NCBI GenBank assembly: GCA_904063045.1
Contig: CAJFCJ010000006.1
Coordinates: forward strand, 2,992,408-3,056,407
Length of the DNA stretch: 64,000 bases
Source of the DNA: Dimorphilus gyrociliatus
Lineage: Eukaryota; Animalia; Annelida
Direction: 5' to 3'
This document shows, in pieces, positions 1,211 to 51,014 of the stretch. Position numbers and translations under genes: made by a program. The notes beneath the pieces were generated by a model that did not search any database, was not told the origin of the DNA, and saw only the letters and a list, made by a program, of their open reading frames with translations. How positions within the stretch are numbered: the stretch's first letter is position 1; the number at the start of each line of letters is the position of its first letter.

Positions 1211-4049
1211 ATGCCTCAATCTTCCGAAAAGTAAGTATTCTAATTATTTAACTTATTTATATTTCTATGGAATTTTCGAAAACTTAAAGTCTTTGTTAAT
1301 TTTGCTTATCTTTGTTTTATTGTTTACCACAAGATAGTAATCGTCTGTTCGCAGCGTTGTATCATGTTTCCGCTGTCTTTGGCTCCTGTCCGTCCTTTTA
1401 TTTGTAAACAAGTCTTCTCCATTATGATAGAACTATCAATTTATATGTATTTGAAAAAAAAATTATTGTGTTATAATAAAAATATTCAGTTTCAATTAAC
1501 GGCCATGATCCTTTGTTTCAGCACTAATGAAAAGGAGGTAGCATCAACAAGTGTTGAACAGTCTCCTGAAGATTTAGAAGGATACGTCTATGGAGAACTT
1601 GTAGTGCTCGGATACAATGGTTCGCTTGGAAATGGTATGGACAAAGGAAGACGTCGTAATAAATTGTTACTAAAACGACGGTCCAAACCGTCTGGTGTGA
1701 AACCCTCTGTTAAACATGAAGTGAAGAATCCTCAACAGTGCGACCTGATTAAGAATACCTCTAAGCATTCTGTTTCCTACACTTTAAACAGACATCGTGC
1801 AGTTGTTGTACAGTATGACCACGATGAGAAAACAGATATGTTTCAAATTGGCCGGTCTTCTGAGCCCCAAATTGACCTTATTGTTATGGATACAATTCGA
1901 GGTGACGAAAGATCGAAATCAAAGACAGTTACTCAATCTACGATATCTCGATTCGCTTGTCGAATACTTATTGAACGAGAACCTCCTTTTAAGGCTAGAA
2001 TATATGCCGCCGGTTTTGATATATCCCGTAATATTTTCCTTGGTGAGAAAGCAACAAAATGGCAAACTGAAACAGACATTGACGGCTTAACAACGAATGG
2101 TATTTTGATAATGCACCCATCAAAGATACCAGGTAGAACAAGTGTTTGGAGAGAGGTGTCAGTGGGAGGGGGAATTTACGCACTCAGAGAATCAAGATCA
2201 ACGCCTCAAAAATCGAGTCTCATACCAGGAGAAGACAACGTACTGCAGGACGGTACGCTCATTGATCTCTGCGGAGCAACATTATTGTGGCGTTCATCAG
2301 CCGGCTTATACAATTCACCCAGCAGACGTGAATTGGAATCAAGGGTAGCCGAAATGAATGCCGGACGCCCACAATGTCCTGTTGGTCTGAATACGTTGGT
2401 TTTTCCAACTAAAGCAAATGTAAATAGTATTGATGGAGAACGTACGCCGCACGTTTATATGACCTGTGGTCACGTGCATGGTCAGCACAGCTGGGAAGCC
2501 GAGGGAGACGGAAAAGAAAGAAGAACGTGCCCAATGTGTAGAACGACTGGTCCGTTCGAAAAATTACAATTAGGCATTGAAACGACATTTTACGTAGATA
2601 ACGAACCCCCGACCCATTGCTTTTATCCCTGTGCTCATATGGCTTCAGAAAACACAGTCAAGTAAGCAATTTTTCATTAAAATAATATTTAATAAATTGG
2701 TATATTCGAGATATTTTTCTTCCTTACGAAAAAAAAAGAGATGCTAGGCCTGAAAGTTTTTTCTGTCTACTTTCATATTGCAATTTTTTTTATAACAGCG
2801 ATTCTTTTTTTTATGAACCAAATTTTCTTTTTTTTGTAAAACTATTAGCATATATGTAATTGGGGTAGAAATTCCATTGAAGTTAGATATCATTCTCTTT
2901 CCTTTAAGCTTTTACTCTTTGTTTTGTTTGGTTTTTTTTTTGTCTTTTTTTTTTTACTATCTCTTATATCACTCTTTATCATTCTTTTCCCGTTCTCTTT
3001 CCCCACCTTTTTTTCTTTTTTTACTTTCTACGAAAAATGATAAAAAGTGTATAGAAAATGTTTTATAAAAGATATTGTAACATTTGTTAAGAGTTGTTAA
3101 AGTATCACATTTGTTTAAGAATAACATAAGTATTGGGAAATGAGTAAATTATATGAAAGAAGCATTATGATTTTATCGATTAATTCTAACGTTCTACTTC
3201 ACTCGTCAAAAGCAATATCATAAAAATTAAGTAATTTACAGTAATATAGAGAATTAAGCATTTATTTTAATATATAAATATAGAATCTATTTATTATTAG
3301 TTTTTCAATTATAAACAAATACCTGTAATGTATAGACTTACGGTTATTATTTTTTAACTCTCCTTCTCATCTATATATATTATTATTTTGATGTTATTCA
3401 AGTATAACATGATAAACACTTGAGATAATAAAAACGTATATTTTTTTTTAAGGAGAAAATTTTTTTCTGCTTACCCTCCTCCCCCCACACCCCCTCCCTC
3501 TCTCTCTCTCGCACACACACACACATTTATATATACTCTCTCTCTCTCTCTCTCTATACTGCTCTTTCATTACCTGTTTAAAAATGAGGTCAATTATGTG
3601 TAATACGCCCTTCTTTATTTTACACCTATATTTAATATAAATCTATAGAAATTTTATTTTATATATCATGAAAATGAGCAGATTCTAGAGAAGGAGAGTT
3701 ACTTTTTTGGTTTTACTTACTTTTATCACGTGATATCGGGTTTATTTAAGGAAGACAATAGAGTAGGATGTTTAAGTTTGCTAAAGAAATAGGCGTACTA
3801 TCTTTGGATGTATGCTAATTTCAAATTGCTGAGTGAGTTAGATAGTTAATGAGATTTTTTTTGAAAGGTGTTTAGATAATAAATTAATCATCAAGTATAT
3901 TTTATTCTTTCTTTTTCTGCAGATATTGGTCGTCGATACCAATACCTCATGGTTGCCATGCATTTCAAGCCGTCTGCCCGTTTTGTGCGACGCCTGTAAA
4001 CTCAGAAACCGGCTACATTCGTTTGATCTTTCAAGATCATGTCGACTGA
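1211..4049 (+). CDS. PELI: E3 ubiquitin ligase Pellino (FHA + RING-like)
   Basis: Exons 1211-1230 (MPQSSEN), 1522-2661, 3923-4049, with consistent phases. Motifs YGELVVLGYNG, MFQIGRS (FHA), STISRFACRI, CPVGLNTL, CGHVHG, CPMC, and C-terminal YWSSIPIPHG..CPFC..GYIRLIFQ. Confidence 0.95.
3479..3560. repeat. Compound microsatellite (CT)n/(CA)n/(TA)n in Pellino intron 2
   Basis: ctccctctctctctctcgcacacacacacacatttatatatactctctctctctc is read directly from the sequence. Confidence 0.9.
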
Positions 4050-10774: not shown

Positions 10775-11894
10775 ATGTCTTTTATGTTGCTCTTGGAGCT
10801 GCTTCAAATGCGGTAACTAAGGCTCATCCTTGCTAAAGATTATTACTGCTATATAGTTGTGCATTCTGATATTGATACCTTTGTTGGATGATTTCTAATC
10901 GCTTTCAATGTTTAGAAAATTTTCGAGAAAACCGTGTGTCATTGAATACGAAAAATATACGGAAAAAGGATATGATTCAGATGAAAGAGCTCATCGAAAG
11001 TGTATTGAAGGTTACTATCGAGTATCTCAACCAGAGCGGTTTAAAGTTATAGGAAGTCGGCGATGGGGTGATGAAATTGATGCAAATTACAATCCTCCTC
11101 GGTTCACTGATTCCTCTGTCCTAATGGATCCTACAACAATGAAGAAGCCAATTTGGGCTGATTTACCAGAGAGTCAACTGTTCAATGTTCTATGGAATCA
11201 AGAAGACGAACTTGATGGGAGAAAAGTGAATAGAAAAAGCTTTGAATGCGATTACATAGTTGGACCAGCTTGTAAAGCTGATTTAGGACGATGTAATTTA
11301 CCATTGAATCCCAAAGGAAAAACGGGTATTGTAGGTCGAGGAATACTTGGACGCTGGGGGCCAAATCATGCTGCTGATCCTATTGTAACTAGGTGGAATT
11401 TAAAAAACGACGGGACAAAAGTTTTACAATTTGTAGCAATAAAACGGGGCGATAATGGCGAGTGGGCTATACCTGGTGGTATGGTGGAACCAGGGGAAAA
11501 TGTAAGTCAGACTTTAATAAAAGAGTTCTGCGAAGAAGCATTAGGAATATGGGAAGAAGAGAGTAAAGATATATCCTTAGAAACCAGAGAGGAAAAACGA
11601 ACAGAAATTGTTAATGAATTAAAAGAATTTTTCGAGGAAACTGGTGTTAAAATTTATTCAGGATATGTTGACGATCCAAGAAATACGGATAATGCCTGGG
11701 TTGAAACTACAGTTTTCAATTTTCACGAAACTGATTCTAAAACTGTCAGCAAATATAATCTAAGGGCTGGTGACGATGCTATCAATGTAAAGTGGATGAA
11801 TATAGATGAATGCCAACAATTGTATGCAAGCCATTTAGACTTTGTTAGAATGGTTGCAGAGAAACACGTCGTTCCAATGAATACAGATTTGTGA
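10775..11894 (+). CDS. NUDT9: ADP-ribose pyrophosphatase NUDT9-like Nudix hydrolase
   Basis: ORF 10908-11894 has PLNPKGKTGIVGRGILGRWGPNHAADPIVTRW, the Nudix box GGMVEPGE..KEFCEEALG, GYVDDPRNTDNAWVET and AGDDA. A phase-compatible upstream exon 10775-10812 is possible (intron 10813-10915). Confidence 0.93.
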
Positions 11895-12121: not shown

Positions 12122-13850
12122 TTAGGTAAAATTTCTGAATAGAGAATTATCTTTAAAGCTAAATATACTACAGGCAGCTCGATAGCTTTTGCATTTCAAT
12201 TCTTTTAAATATTGAAAATTGACAAATTGCCATAAAGTTTCTAATGAACATAATTTATCATTTTCTAAAGGTTTTCCTTTACAAAAGCCAATTTTTCTTG
12301 TTACATCCTTTCCATTATACAAAACTCTAAAGTAGTTCCTTTCATTATATTCGTACTGTTCGAAGATGATCCTAGAGGCGTACGGAGGCCATATACCCGT
12401 ATTAACCCCTAAAAGCGTCAATAGAGGATCTATAGTGGAATCGTGTCCAGAGTAAAGGAAAAATTTTTCAATAGTCTTTTCTTTCATGTTGGACGCTATT
12501 TCGTATAAAAGTGGAATCATTTTTAAATATGATACAACTTTCCAAAAATTCGTGTTGACTTTAGTCTTTCCATGAGAATTAACAAAGTTAACAAGCTTCC
12601 TAAACTCGACAGGATTTATGCAGTCTCTTTTGTACGAGGGCAGAAATTCATTGTGACAAGCTTGAACCATTGCAGTATCCATTATTTGTCGGGCAGGTGG
12701 TAAATTTGAAGCATCGACGTCAAATACATTGGACATGTGTTTATAAACAGAGTATAATTTCGGATGTTTATAAGAGTTAGCAGGCTGGTTAACACCAGAT
12801 GCCATTAAGTTCATAATGGCTTCTTCTTTTAAAGGTTTACATGCACATGGATGATTGGATTTCTGGTGGCATAAGCTGTTATTTCCAGCCTGGAATGTGG
12901 TTTTAAAATTACAAATAGTTGTTATTGAGACCTAGTTCTAAAGAATTGCACATTTCATTAATAATAACTGTAATAGTACTTTAAGTTAGATTTATAAGTA
13001 ATTAAATAACTAAAACCACATTCCTTGTCTATAGTTATCCTGTTTACAGTGAAATTTGGTAGAAAACCGTGGAGGAGAGCTAAAGCACTTTGAAAAGTTC
13101 TACGATAATAAGTACTTCTTACATAGACTTTGTTGTCGTATTGATCGTCCAATAGTTTGTGATTTTTTATGTATCTTTCATTTAATAATTTACCTATTTC
13201 TACATGTTGAGCTGCGCCTTCTGGAGTGAGGAAAGCTTGACCGCAAAATTCATCATTGGGGAAAATTGGGAAAGGTTTAAAACTATCTCCTTTATTCCTT
13301 AAATTCAATTTGACTTGTTTATTCATTGATTCTGTATAATTTTTAAAAGACGGTAGCTTCTTTTTAAGTTGAACATTATCTTGAGCTTTGCAAGACTCAG
13401 TCAAGTATTTATGATTTGGAATTGAGTGAATTGGAAACCTATCACCATGTCTAATAATAGTAAATACTTTTGTTAGTTTATACTTGGAACTAATTGAGCC
13501 TGGAACATATCAATTAGTTTTAAAGTAAATGTATTTCTTTCAATATAATAAATACACACCTTCTTCTCCATTGCCTATTTCTGTTGGAAAGTTGCAGTAG
13601 TAAAGAATATCGTCTTTCATTATCTTTTCCGATGGAAGAACTTTCTTGCAATTTGAAGAATATGATATTGTATAAGAATAAACTGAAATTTTTGGCGGGT
13701 ATTAAATATGATTGAAATATATTATTTCGAATTTTAACAACCTAGATATAGAATAATGCATGATACAGGAAAGGCTATAAAAAATGCTGGTCTCCATTTC
13801 AATCTAACGATCTTCATTCTTTCTCCAAATCCTGTTTTGCGTGAAGTCAT
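12122..13850 (-). CDS. PXYLP1: 2-phosphoxylose phosphatase 1 (ACPL2) histidine acid phosphatase, type II membrane
   Basis: Exons about 13850-13742 (signal anchor), 13682-13560, 13500-13024, 12889-12122. Motifs YCNFP, IIRHGDRFP, LTPEGAAQH, RTFQSALALLHGFLP, LYSGHDSTI, WPPYASRIIFE, RVLYNGKDVT. Confidence 0.88.
12892..13024. repeat. Perfect 14-bp inverted repeat (GGAATGTGGTTTTA ... TAAAACCACATTCC) bounding PXYLP1 intron 3
   Basis: Arms 12892-12905 and 13011-13024 are exact reverse complements, separated by 105 nt of AT-rich spacer. Confidence 0.9.
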
Positions 13851-14562
13851 TTAATTCATTCAACGTCACTAAAGAATTAAATTTTGCGTATTATCGTTCA
13901 TCAATGACATTCATTGAATAAGCCGAAAAATGTCAAAATTCACTTTGGGAGATCTAAAATTATTGAATAGCAATAATGATTTATCTGCAATGGATAACAA
14001 TTTGATTTTGTTAGGTTTCCATTTAAGTTAAGGAGACTAAAAGTTGTATCCAACGTATAAGGAATCGACTCACAAAACTGGTACTGATTTATTTATTTTC
14101 CGGTTCCTGTAATCGGATTGCGCCAGTTTTAAACTTGTCACTATAATAAATTAGAAATGAATGCCCGAAAATTAGCATTTTCAACGCTTTACATATCAAT
14201 ATTATAGAGGCTATATTTAATAAATGTAGAGTTTACTTGAAGTTATGCAGCTCATCTTTCACTGTTACTGAGATTTTTTTGTATAAAAAATTTTCATGTA
14301 ACGTTCAATATAATGTTTGCTAAAAGCACAATTTACTGTTTCAATACAAGCAGATATCAAGTTATTTCTTATCAATTTCCATTTCATACGATATATTATA
14401 GGTTATTTTCATTTTACCACAGCAGGCTAATGAACGTAACTACATTTCCAAGTAACCGGAAGCATTGACTAGTATTCGATTGGAAAATTGTCAACGGAAA
14501 TGGATGTCCCAAACCAGTTTTTACATGTCATTTCGTAACTGCCAAAAAAACGAAAAAAAGGA

Positions 14563-17448
<2,886 letters not shown>

Positions 17449-42900: not shown

Positions 42901-45110
42901 CACTCAAACATAACTACGAAGATGGCAATAATGATAACGACACATTATTTTTTACATTAAGTAGCAACTGTAATAGGCATATCTTGAAGTGATATCGATT
43001 GTCTTTTCTCATTGTTAACCTACTTTTATAAGGAGACTACTAAATAACAATCACGTATTGAATGTAAAAGTGGCTTATATTGTTAATATACATGGTATAT
43101 GTATAAAGCACGTGGCTAAATTAGCATAAAATGATTAATCATAAAATATTAACTTTATATAAATATTCTATAAGAATTATCCTTATGTTCAATCTAGGCC
43201 TATTTGTCGATTGAATTACAAAAGAATTACTGTATATACCTTTTTAAAGCAAAATGTAAGAATTCTATACTTAGGAAATATGGATATAAGATTTCTATAT
43301 ATAGAAAATTGGTTATTAATGAACTATTAAGTCTCTGTCTTTCTATTGCCAAATAACTTTAGTATGCAATCATAAATCTCTATCGAAACAAGATCTTAGC
43401 ATTAATTAGAATAAGAAATGGGCTTCCTTTATTACTTTAGAATGCAATACCATATTCACTATGGAAGACATCCAAAACAATTTTCCTTTAAGATTAATAA
43501 CCTCAAAGCATTGTAATTTGTAAACAAACGCTGAGGCTCATGTTAAATTTTTTGTATAAGTCTTTTCAGATAGTTTGTCAATATTTAAAACGAAAAATAA
43601 CTTACTTTTTGCCCTTTTTATCTACTACTCCATAGAGTTTATATACTGCATATACAGTATGTATAAGTATATATATATATATATGAAGAATAATTCTACA
43701 AGGATAGTAATACCATTTTGTATAAATTAAATACTGTACATAAAAAAAGGTTAGTTTTAGCTAATTAATTGGTTTTTCTTCAAAATATTCACCTCCAATC
43801 ATTTTAAACAAAGACCTTTTATACTTTTTTTTATAGATATGATTTGTCTTAATTGAATTCCAGAAAAATGAAAAAAAAAAACACTGGAATTAGAATAAAT
43901 AAGTCGATAGAGGGCACTGTAGAAATTAGCTGTCTATTGTTTTATCTGTTCTAAAAGAATTGGAAAGTAATGGAACAGAAAATTTAAGTCCACAAGGGTA
44001 AAGACAGTCGTATCAAAATCGTAACCGATAAATAAATCTTGATAATTGTAAAGAAGACCCTCAGGCGTGGAATCTCCTAATTAAATCTATGAGGATTATA
44101 CGATTGCATTCGAAACTAAAAATGGAAGGAATCAATCATTTCGTTCTCTTTTTATTATTTCATCACCTACGGTAGAAAAGCCTTCAACGTAGTTTTTAAC
44201 CTTTTCTCGCTATCCATTAATCAATGTTAATTTAATTTACTTTACTAATTCTTTTCAATTTCTACAGTTCTGTAAGTTAAAATTTGGTAGCTGGACCTAT
44301 GATGGTTTTCAAGTTGACATGATCAATAGAACAACTCAAGTAGATTTATCAAATTATGTAGAATCTGGTGAATGGGAATTGATAGGCATCGAGATAGAAC
44401 GAAACGTTGTTTTCTACGGATGCTGTGACGAACCTTATCCGGACGTGACCTTCCGTATTCACATCCGTAGAAGGACCCTATACTACCTATACAATGTTAT
44501 CTTTCCCTGCATAATGATGTCGACCTTAACCCTGCTCGTCTTCCGTCTTCCGCCCGAATCGGGTGAGAAAGTAACAATGGGTATTACTGTGTTACTCGCC
44601 TTTAGCGTTTTTATGTTGTCAGTGGCTGAGCGTTTGCCCGAAACCTCCGAATTTATACCTCTTTTGAGCGTCTATTTAACGGTGGTTATGGCAATGACAT
44701 CAGTTTCCGTTATAATGACTGTAATCGTGTTGAATTTGCATTATAGAGGGCCGAAACAGCAAGCCGTTCCTCGGTGGCTAAAGAGTCTATTAAGAGTCTC
44801 CGAGTCTAAAAAATTATCGAACGACCGAATTGGCGTAAAGATTGAAAGGAACGGTCTAACTATTCCAGTAGATGGCTTGGCCCGCGAATTAACTGATGAG
44901 CTACCTGAATCAAGACAGGATAGGGTACTAGACGCGCTCAATCGTATTATTGATAGATACGAAAAAGACGAATTTAGAGAAATGATGGAAGACGAATGGA
45001 GGCAAGTAGCCGTATCTGTTGACTGTATACTATTTTGGCTGTTTCTTTTCTTCACACTCTTATCAACTGTCATCATTTTAATCATTGCTCCTCTAAGTAA
45101 GCCTATATGA
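39908..45110 (+). CDS. Nicotinic acetylcholine receptor alpha9/alpha10-like subunit
   Basis: Exons 39908-39962 (signal-peptide-like MKNKCTLFSLFYLL, phase 1), 40110-40273, 41446-41600, 41709-41844, 44268-45110. Motifs Cys-loop SSCKFDVTYFPFDDQFC, SWTYDG, FYGCCDEPYPD, PPESGEKVTMGITVLLAFSVFML. Confidence 0.92.
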
Positions 45111-47810: not shown

Positions 47811-47982
47811 ATGGAGAGAAACTGCGGCGACAAACTCGACAGTTTGGTGTCGCTTCGAACACGTACATACGCCGGCGTCATTTTGAGGTTAGCTTAGTAC
47901 GAACAAGGTACGTGTTTTTCTCTATATTTATATATATGTACAGTATATATACTATATATATATACTATATATACTATATATA

Positions 47983-48019
<37 letters not shown>

Positions 48020-51014
48020 AGACAGTATATATACTATTTATATATATACAGTATACATTCATTTATACATCCATATTATTATTATATCTTTATGTTGTCG
48101 TTCTAAACTAATTAAAAAAACAACAGTTTCTTAAGGCTTTATATTTTAAAACAAACTTTTTTTTGGGAATATAAACTAGTGGCGAAAATATTGTGAATAT
48201 AAAAACTGAGTTATTAGGATATTAAATGCATATGGAACGTATAAAAGAGTAATCGATGATACACGACATCTCTTTGTTAATGAAAGTCAAGCAATATATA
48301 TATCTATATTTCTCTATTTATATATATATATATATATAGTTCAACCATTCTTTTGTACTTTGTAAGATTGTAACAACTTCCATAAGAAGAAAATAGTAAA
48401 AAAAGAAAGATGGTAATTGTTTGGTAATGAAAAAAAAGTTTTTTTCTTCTAATTCTATTATACCACATAATCCTTTTAGAAATTTATTCTCAATAGTTAC
48501 CCTTCCCTTTAATTACATCTATATTGTTTACTAAATCAAGCAGACTCGCTAATTTGTATACACATCAGTAAACAAATCATACGTAAGTTTTTCCCTCTCC
48601 TATTATAGTTCTATCCATCTGTATCCTTCAATCTGTTTGTCACTTTCTCTCTCTCTCTCTCTCTCTTCTTTTTTAGTTTACAGCTTCTTCATCACCCTTT
48701 AAATCTATATACCTCCACCCACACTGTTTTTTCTTTCTTATGTTATAAAGTATATCATCCATCATAGTTCTCAGTTTGTATTTAATCAATTAATAAAAGT
48801 CGGTAATACACTCTCTTTTAGAAGCGTCTTTAATGCGTAAGCTTATATGCAAGCTAGTGATTTCTTATGTGTTTAATCTATTAAGGATGTACAGGTAGAA
48901 GTATTTTAACTAGAATGCTATAAATGTTTTATGTATGAAAAAGATAAAAAAAATATCGCAGGGTTATCTCGTGCACGTACGATATACGCACTAATTCAAC
49001 CTTCTTTTTACCTGCCTCATCATTCTACTTAATGTTTGCTGTTAGAATTAGGCGTTGATAGTTACTACGAGTGCGAAAGAGAATATTATTATTTAAATGA
49101 TAATTGTTTTTATTACTGTTCTAATTTGAATTAGTGAATATATTAAATAGAAAAGATGGTATATTTAGTGTTAATGTACATTGATTGTAGAGACAAGAAT
49201 GAAAAAAAAATTATATTTTTCTTTTATCACTGGTACTCTTCATAGAATATTCTATCAAAACAGTTAATATCCATAATTTATCATCTGTTGCTTATACTTT
49301 TGTAATTTTTTTCCAACTAGAAATATATAACAAAGTTATAGCCTTCTTTCTATAGTTTTAATCTAATCGCCTATCTTTATCAATCATCTTCTTTTTCCTC
49401 GTTTTTCGTCCTCTCCTCTCTTCTCATCAAATTTTCTCCTTTGCTTCTTATTGAATATGATGATATTTGGCAGAACGTATCTATCTGTCGGACATCTGAT
49501 AATATCAAATAGTAATAAAGGAAACAAGTTTATTTTCTGTCTGGAACAATCTTAAAAGACAATATCATCTTTCAAGTCGATATAGAATGTACTGCTTTTA
49601 TGAAGCTAAAATAGACTTAGTAGCAATTTTTTTCACCTATTTTTTTTCAGGTGTAAATCAATGAAGCAAAAAAAAATAGACGTAAACAATTCTTTCTGTT
49701 AAAAGAGGCGGAGCGATCACTTTCCCAATTCCGCTTGACCTCCTCTCCTATTAATCAATTAAGCTTTTATTAAAGAAAAACGCTTACGTATATGTGTTAA
49801 AGTGATAATTTTAGCATATAATTTTTCTTCTTTAGTGAGTCTTATACAGTATATCATTAATTCGTGTTCTAAAATACTTTTTATGTAGGTTTTATTACTG
49901 TCTTTGTTGAATTGGGCCTATTTCCACTTAATTTCGTATTCGTTAAACGGAACGAGTGTAAAAAATTTTGTCGTTTGCTGTAGGTCGAGACGTGGGTAGA
50001 ATGGTAAAACACTCATTGACAATAATAACAAAAAAAAGGCGTGTAAAATGGTTTTATTTTGTATAAGTAAAAAAAAAAGGAAGAGAGAGAGAGTAAGAAA
50101 GAAAAAAAAAGCATTTTCAAACCACGCACAACGTGATCGAATAGAAATGAAATATTTCCACATAAACAACATAGAGGGAGAAAGAATATAAAAAGAATAA
50201 ATACGTTCGAAAGTTCGATAGTCGCGAATCGAAATTAGTTGGAACCTTACATACTCTTTTTTTTGTTTTCTCTGTAAGAGCACTAAAAGGTAAGGCTTAT
50301 AGATTTTTTCTCTTTGTGCCTTTTCTCCAATCCATATCACCCCCTCCCCTCCCTCTCTCTCTTCTCGTTCTCTCACTTTCTTTCTTTCTTTCTTTCTCTT
50401 TTACTCTCTCCTCTTTACTTTCTTTCTTTCTCTCCGGCTCACTCGTACTGATATTTTTTTCCATTATAACGTTCTATTCCTCTTCTCTTTTCACTTTCTT
50501 TTCTGCTACCGCCCACAATCATTTCCTCTTTTCGTATCGTAAGTCAAGATACATGCGTGTATATGTATATACGTGTAAATACAAAATATACGGAAGAGAG
50601 TATATTATGAAATCTATCAGTATATATACTGTATACTATAAGTATAGTCTCACTTTCTGCCATTCTTTCCACCTCTTCTAACTTTTCATCTAGTTTTTTA
50701 CACTATTCCAAAGGTCAATTAGAGAGAGTTAGCAAGATAAACTAAGTGAGACAAGACAGTTAGGAAGAGGGCAAAGAGAGGAGATAGAGAATAAGAATAT
50801 AAAACAATACAGGATGAGACTGTTTACGTACCATGGGAAAGAATATTTCTTATCATCAATAATTTCATATTGGAGTGCGTTTATATTCGATCGATTCCCG
50901 GAAATTTCTATAACTAGTTTAGTCAGGCCCAAAAAAATTCCATTTTGCATATCACGCCAAGTATATGCATATCTATAAAACATTTCAATATTTGATTAGT
51001 ATATATATATATTA

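Follow-up and report, generated by a model that had tools for sequence, protein, structure and literature searches.

Dimorphilus gyrociliatus is a tiny marine worm. The stretch of its DNA analysed here, 64 kb long and called the window below, carries on the minus strand a putative PXYLP1-like gene whose third intron has perfectly complementary ends and a donor that is read as GA instead of GT. The locus raises two questions: how such a segment is removed from the transcript, and whether it was born from a transposon, as an earlier note made from the letters alone had proposed, or descends from an ordinary intron. According to the genome paper (PMC7854359), introns have a median length of 66 bp, transposons are few, MITEs of the mariner type are present and gene regulation is otherwise conventional. 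In a full-text literature search, no report of non-canonical major-type introns in D. gyrociliatus was found.

The host gene is assigned by homology as a PXYLP1-like (2-phosphoxylose phosphatase) gene. Its exon 4 is 100% identical to the public D. gyrociliatus model DgyrCDS4933, for which the UniRef name is 2-phosphoxylose phosphatase 1, and exons 3 and 4 match the Pfam family His_Phos_2 (exon 3 at 3.8e-20). The start of exon 1, MKIVRLKWRP..., is also conserved, as MRIVRLKWRP... opens the sequence of the relative described below. Counted from the coordinates, the four transcript-supported coding pieces amount to 1440 nt (480 codons). The exons and introns are placed as follows, except for intron 3, which is given separately.

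13742 to 13817, minus strand: exon 1, coding part (MKIVRLKWRPAFF...), with a hydrophobic signal-anchor-like start; the transcript contig extends to 14140.
13683 to 13741, minus strand: intron 1, 59 nt, GT-AG, phase 1, with no terminal pairing.
13500 to 13559, minus strand: intron 2, 60 nt, GT-AG, phase 1, with no terminal pairing.
13024 to 13499, minus strand: exon 3, 476 nt, with the RHGDR catalytic motif and RRTFQSALALL; its last 8 codons are VNRITIDK.
12125 to 12889, minus strand: exon 4, coding part, 255 codons (AGNNSLC...RNFT), followed by the stop codon at 12122-12124.

On the sense (minus) strand, intron 3 and its borders read GAC AAG/GAATGTGGTTTTA ... TAAAACCACATTCCAG/GCT GGA, where slashes stand for the splice junctions. 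A repeat search returned a terminal inverted repeat of 14 nt, 100% complementary, with arms at 13024-13011 and 12905-12892 that are 105 nt apart; the acceptor AG (12891-12890) follows immediately after the 3' arm.

12890 to 13023, minus strand: intron 3, 134 nt, taken to run from GA to AG, with a possible shift of the register by -1 to +2 nt.
13011 to 13024, minus strand: GGAATGTGGTTTTA, the 5' arm of the repeat, made up of the final base of the exon and the first 13 bases of the intron (+1 to +13), the GA donor included.
12892 to 12905, minus strand: TAAAACCACATTCC, the 3' arm of the repeat, lying at -16 to -3 of the intron, the usual place of the polypyrimidine tract.
12890 to 12891, minus strand: acceptor AG of intron 3, in the context ttccAG/G, as in intron 2.

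The earlier description of these letters, including a 14-nt repeat that spans the 5' junction and reaches the acceptor AG at the other end, was right in every detail that we checked. The repeat is not a product of chance, which is ruled out by the shuffle counts together with the folding z-score. Perfect, non-low-complexity inverted repeats of at least 14 nt with a spacing of 30-400 nt occur three times in the window, against a mean of 0.21 in block shuffles; among the repeats of at least 14 nt in the window, only the one of intron 3 flanks a gap that separates two long open frames. Folded with 4-5 flanking bases, intron 3 reaches -28.3 kcal/mol (z = -3.1; none of 200 shuffles was as stable), and the 14-bp stem is present in the centroid structure. 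Folding of introns 1 and 2 gave no structure beyond that of shuffles, which agrees with the remark in the earlier note that the other introns it resolved were GT-AG and free of such a repeat.

The arrangement appeared only once in the window. The 14-mer has no third site in the 64 kb, even when up to 2 mismatches are allowed, and Rfam gave no match anywhere in the window. A scan for inverted repeats of at least 10 nt bounding gaps between open frames of at least 40 codons found no further end-paired introns in the window; its other match, at 44411-44473, lies inside one continuous ORF and is not an intron.

The two remaining perfect 14-nt repeats have other settings. The repeat AAGTAATGTTTAAG (17062-17075 and 17321-17334, with 245 nt between the arms) has its left arm in the final codons of a plus-strand ORF ending at 17117 and its right arm past the end of that ORF. 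The repeat TAACTCTCCTTCTC, at 3355-3701, encloses 319 nt rich in CT/CA simple repeats, is seemingly non-coding and could represent a small inverted-repeat element. Inverted-repeat searches of the window are swamped by a long, TA-rich tract of low complexity at 47929-48340.

A transcript places the boundaries of the removed segment to within 3 nt. A contig of the public run X2 (record 4, 1690 nt, no mismatch) aligns to 12198-12888, 13023-13498, 13559-13682 and 13742-14140. It joins 13024 to 12889, so that exactly 134 nt are gone, and introns 1 and 2 are gone from the same molecule. The library type of X2 is not on record; its contigs lack introns and therefore represent cDNA. This evidence comes from the assembly of a single run, as a contig and not as raw junction reads, and minor isoforms would be invisible in it. 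None of the X2 contigs extends over any part of the 134 nt, at an exon depth of 402, and the depth in the bin across the intron 3 boundary is exactly that expected from the exon share. The mature transcript does not contain the 134 nt: they form a genuine intron, which is precisely removed. The join is the one that had been predicted from the sequence, 13024 to 12889 with the loss of 134 nt, and no join of 13048 to 12889 was found.

A second run, X1, is a coral metatranscriptome; it confirms introns 1 and 2, and its transcript stops at 13139. The spliced X1 transcript of the PXYLP1-like gene (13139-13948) differs from the genome by 3 bases and a 1-base gap over 690 nt, a near-match indicating that the coral sample contained this worm or a strain very close to it.

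Two GT dinucleotides upstream of the observed junction might have served as donors.

13046 to 13047, minus strand: unused phase-0 GT, ACT/GTAAAC; its use would remove 8 conserved residues.
13121 to 13122, minus strand: unused GT, TAT/GTAAGA; it is the donor in the public model DgyrCDS4933.

No joint from either of them exists among the X2 contigs. Both are ruled out as the true donor by the X2 contig and by the conservation of the residues that would otherwise be deleted; for the GT at 13047 it had been foreseen that 8 aligned residues would be lost, and these residues are indeed conserved in orthologues. The GTs within the 5' arm, at 13019 and 13016, are in phase 1 and meet a TAA past the acceptor, just as had been argued from the reading frame, and reading through intron 3 leads to an in-frame stop. 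The public model DgyrCDS4933 (401 aa; 12122-13817, minus strand) reads ...DNKVY/AGNNSLC, in which 33 residues are missing, RRTFQSALALL among them; moreover, it takes an ATG inside exon 2 as its start and does not include exon 1. As the X2 contig is continuous over 13122 and the lost residues are conserved in orthologues, the model is wrong at the intron 3 donor, and it is wrong at the start as well.

Could the 134 nt be missing from the contig without having been spliced? Reverse transcriptase might have skipped the hairpin by switching from one AGG repeat to the other, or the DNA of the animals used for the transcriptome might have lacked the segment. Template-switch artefacts, which PMC7072748 names as a caveat for GA-AG introns, classically arise where a stable stem is bordered by short direct repeats, as in intron 3, and the transcript evidence consists of contigs only. 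However, a retained loop would appear with random priming, and coverage of the 134 nt in X2 is zero. The X2 contigs show no mismatch to the genome over about 4 kb, pointing to the same strain; retention would place a stop codon in a gene under clear purifying selection; and a related worm carries an intron at exactly the same site. We regard an artefact or a DNA difference of this kind as extremely improbable.

The exact cut has a small ambiguity of its own. Because AGG stands on both flanks of intron 3, the junction has a 3-nt ambiguity of register, and the ends can be written as AA..GG, GA..AG, GG..CA or AG..CC. Only GA..AG, the pair named in the earlier note, has an AG acceptor; that call stands as the sole register of the four with this property, while the cut itself is fixed to within 3 nt. 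The donor, AAG/GAAUGU, keeps 7 of the 9 positions of the consensus MAG/GURAGU in our own comparison, including G+1, A+3, G+5 and U+6. Its context, AG/GA followed by A (AAG/GAATGT), is the same as in GA-AG introns of Eurytemora and Oikopleura (PMC7072748). A U12-type (minor) intron was considered and rejected, the donor GAATGTGG being unlike RTATCCTT. Given the normal acceptor ttccAG/G, the donor consensus and the AG/GA+A context, the cut is probably GA...AG and would be made by the major (U2-type) spliceosome.

A cut guided by the stem rather than by the usual splice-site rules deserves comparison here. The nonconventional introns of euglenids have non-GT borders and pairable ends, have no AG acceptor or donor consensus, and are the dominant class in a protist. 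Intron 3 resembles them, by these features, in its non-GT border and in the ability of its ends to pair; it differs in keeping an AG acceptor and a donor consensus. If removal were directed by the paired ends instead of the dinucleotides, as in the euglenid introns or in Fritillaria, the register could be GG..CA or AG..CC. The 3-nt ambiguity leaves room for this, and in two of the four readings the cut coincides with the base of the stem. Nevertheless, intron 3 keeps a normal acceptor context, ttccAG/G, and the donor consensus at +1, +3, +5 and +6. In other animals the ordinary spliceosome removes GA-AG introns (PMC7072748), and splicing in this species is otherwise conventional according to the genome paper (PMC7854359). 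A stem-guided cut is less economical than a U2-type GA-AG intron, in view of the acceptor and the donor consensus, and we consider it unlikely.

The history of the intron was examined in a relative represented by the Logan genomic contigs L001 and L002, with about 70% protein identity in exon 4. Its junction reads ...ATC GAT AAG/gtagtc...atttcag/GCA CAA (ITIDK/AQNNSLC) in L001, and the same in L002; the intron is a 97-nt GT-AG intron at the codon boundary and in the phase identical to those of intron 3 of D. gyrociliatus. No paired ends were found in it, and its fold (-7.5 kcal/mol, z = +0.8) is no better than that of shuffles. AGG..AGG flanks are present around this GT-AG intron as well. The exon 3 alignment of the two species spans 158 codons and has no gap; 61 codons are identical, 57 differ only synonymously and 40 are replacements. 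Approximately half of the residue-keeping codons have thus changed, which argues that the intron position is old. In the last 8 codons of exon 3, VNRITIDK against VNKITIDK in the relative, 7 of 8 codons but only one residue have changed (codon by codon, ssNssss=). As the changes are almost all synonymous, these codons are translated in both lineages, and the comparison indicates that the end of exon 3 is under protein-level constraint and that the exon reaches the AAG at 13024.

Wider comparison agrees with this boundary. Distant orthologues, from insects and from eukaryotes in metagenome assemblies, align colinearly over the junction, exactly or to within one residue, so that the colinearity first argued from a human sequence holds against the relative and the distant proteins alike. 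An intron at this site is absent in more distant orthologues (Sitophilus, a eukaryote and several metagenome proteins); therefore, the position is not universal among animals. No third dinophilid orthologue came from word searches that used either exon 3 extended by its read-through tail or the 105-aa ORF of the relative.

The downstream neighbour of the gene is shared between the two species. An intronless NUDT9-like gene (328-aa ORF, 10908-11894, plus strand) converges on the phosphatase gene and is covered by one unbroken X2 contig. The order phosphatase to NUDT9 is kept in the relative, whose NUDT9-like gene lies at 3963-4955 of L001 and which also has a MYST-type gene upstream. Beside the phosphatase gene, at 14703-14898 on the plus strand, there is a transcript with two GT-AG joints of 61 nt each (X2, record 6).

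These data bear directly on the proposal that intron 3 is of introner or MITE origin, i.e., that an element with terminal inverted repeats was inserted, duplicated an AGG target site and was spliced by means of a borrowed AG. Its architecture invites the idea. In Amoebophrya introners, an inverted repeat of 8-20 nt joins the intron ends, a direct repeat of 3-5 nt is present and the donor is not GT (PMC7789003), and intron 3, with its terminal inverted repeat and its 3-nt direct repeat over the boundaries, fits this description. MITE-derived introns of Fritillaria borealis have the same architecture, with paired ends, a boundary direct repeat and a non-GT donor, as presented in a review (PMC11282704). 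Mariner-type MITEs do exist in the D. gyrociliatus genome (PMC7854359), and intron 3 is about twice as long as the median of 66 bp.

Against this origin, the relative has a canonical, unpaired intron at the very same site, in the same phase and between AGG..AGG flanks, so that both the intron and its flanks are older than the repeat. The test suggested in the earlier note, that the intron should be absent in relatives, came out the other way, as both L001 and L002 carry it. AG on both flanks had been taken as a hallmark of a transposon-derived intron; since an ordinary intron in the relative has the same flanks, AGG is not a target-site duplication and belongs to the splice-site and exon consensus. 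Furthermore, neither the arms nor the intron body have a second copy in the 64-kb window, the TA duplication typical of mariner elements is absent, and an AGG duplication would leave unequal arms of 12 and 14 nt. Finally, insertion would require the old intron to have been lost precisely before the element entered at the same phosphodiester bond. The introns of Amoebophrya, in contrast, form repeated families at species-specific positions (PMC7789003). Those of Fritillaria are likewise repeated and species-specific (PMC11282704), while the position of intron 3 is shared and its direct repeat is the splice-site consensus. Birth from a transposon is, in our judgement, highly unlikely.

The explanation we prefer is that an ancestral intron became GA-AG and end-paired in place and is still removed by the major spliceosome; we assign it a probability of about 0.72. 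The direction of change from GT to GA is suggested by a comparison of two species. The repeat most likely arose in place, and a single local event is favoured, as the 14-nt repeat is perfect and undecayed. In such an event, for example a template switch, the reverse complement of the 3' end would have been copied over intron positions +2 to +13, and this one act of copying would both destroy the GT and make the stem. The 3' arm agrees with the end of the relative's intron at 10 of 14 positions, with all differences C/T; judged by hand against another intron end, this is not clearly above the likeness of any two AT-rich intron ends, and the comparison was set aside.

What the stem does for intron 3 is a separate matter. 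A 14-bp stem burying the donor and the region of the pyrimidine tract would be expected to hinder U1 and U2AF, so that a helping role is not obvious. Conversely, the stem might hold a weak donor beside the acceptor and could stand in for a poor pyrimidine tract. Analogies are available: zebrafish (AC)m-(GT)n introns are spliced without U2AF2 (PMC4691745), and pairing of the 5' splice site with the branch point occurs in yeast introns, as cited in the same paper. Like the zebrafish introns, intron 3 has a complementary segment near each end, and the pairing of the two is predicted to draw the splice sites towards each other, with the 3' arm at the place of U2AF2 (PMC4691745). The zebrafish segments, however, are AC/GT dinucleotide repeats accompanied by canonical splice sites (PMC4691745), whereas in intron 3 a unique 14-mer includes the donor itself. 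We give assistance to splicing slightly less than an even chance; alternatively, the stem would be a tolerated by-product of the copying event.

Among animals, GA-AG introns of the U2 type are known from Eurytemora affinis, Oikopleura dioica and human FGFR genes (PMC7072748). With those of Eurytemora and Oikopleura intron 3, if read as GA..AG, shares the GA donor, the normal AG acceptor, the exon end AG, the A after GA and RNA support (PMC7072748). The introns of these two species are a frequent class with no paired ends described (PMC7072748), whereas in D. gyrociliatus a 14-bp stem surrounds the donor; intron 3, as set against them, has a GT-AG orthologue in a relative. Intron 3 joins two known kinds, the GA-AG intron and the end-paired intron. 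The locus contributes the transcript-proven junction and the canonical, stemless orthologous intron.

Several wider points can be made. First, the look of a transposon (paired ends, a short flanking repeat and an odd donor) can arise without a transposon at an old intron position, which is a caution to surveys that call introners from these three features alone. Second, annotation pipelines restricted to GT-AG would repeat the donor error of DgyrCDS4933 wherever such introns occur in the genome. Third, the two species offer a natural pair in which rescue of a weak donor by end pairing can be tested, with GT and no stem in one and GA and a stem in the other. Finally, D. gyrociliatus, slowly evolving and otherwise conventional in its splicing, could possess a whole class of introns in which perfect, intron-specific end stems let the ordinary spliceosome use non-GT donors, these introns having arisen in place from GT-AG introns by local inverted-copy mutations and not from transposons. 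We hold this broader idea tentatively and consider it rather doubtful; were such a class real, the present locus, with its transcript-proven junction and its canonical unpaired orthologue, would be the clearest case of it.
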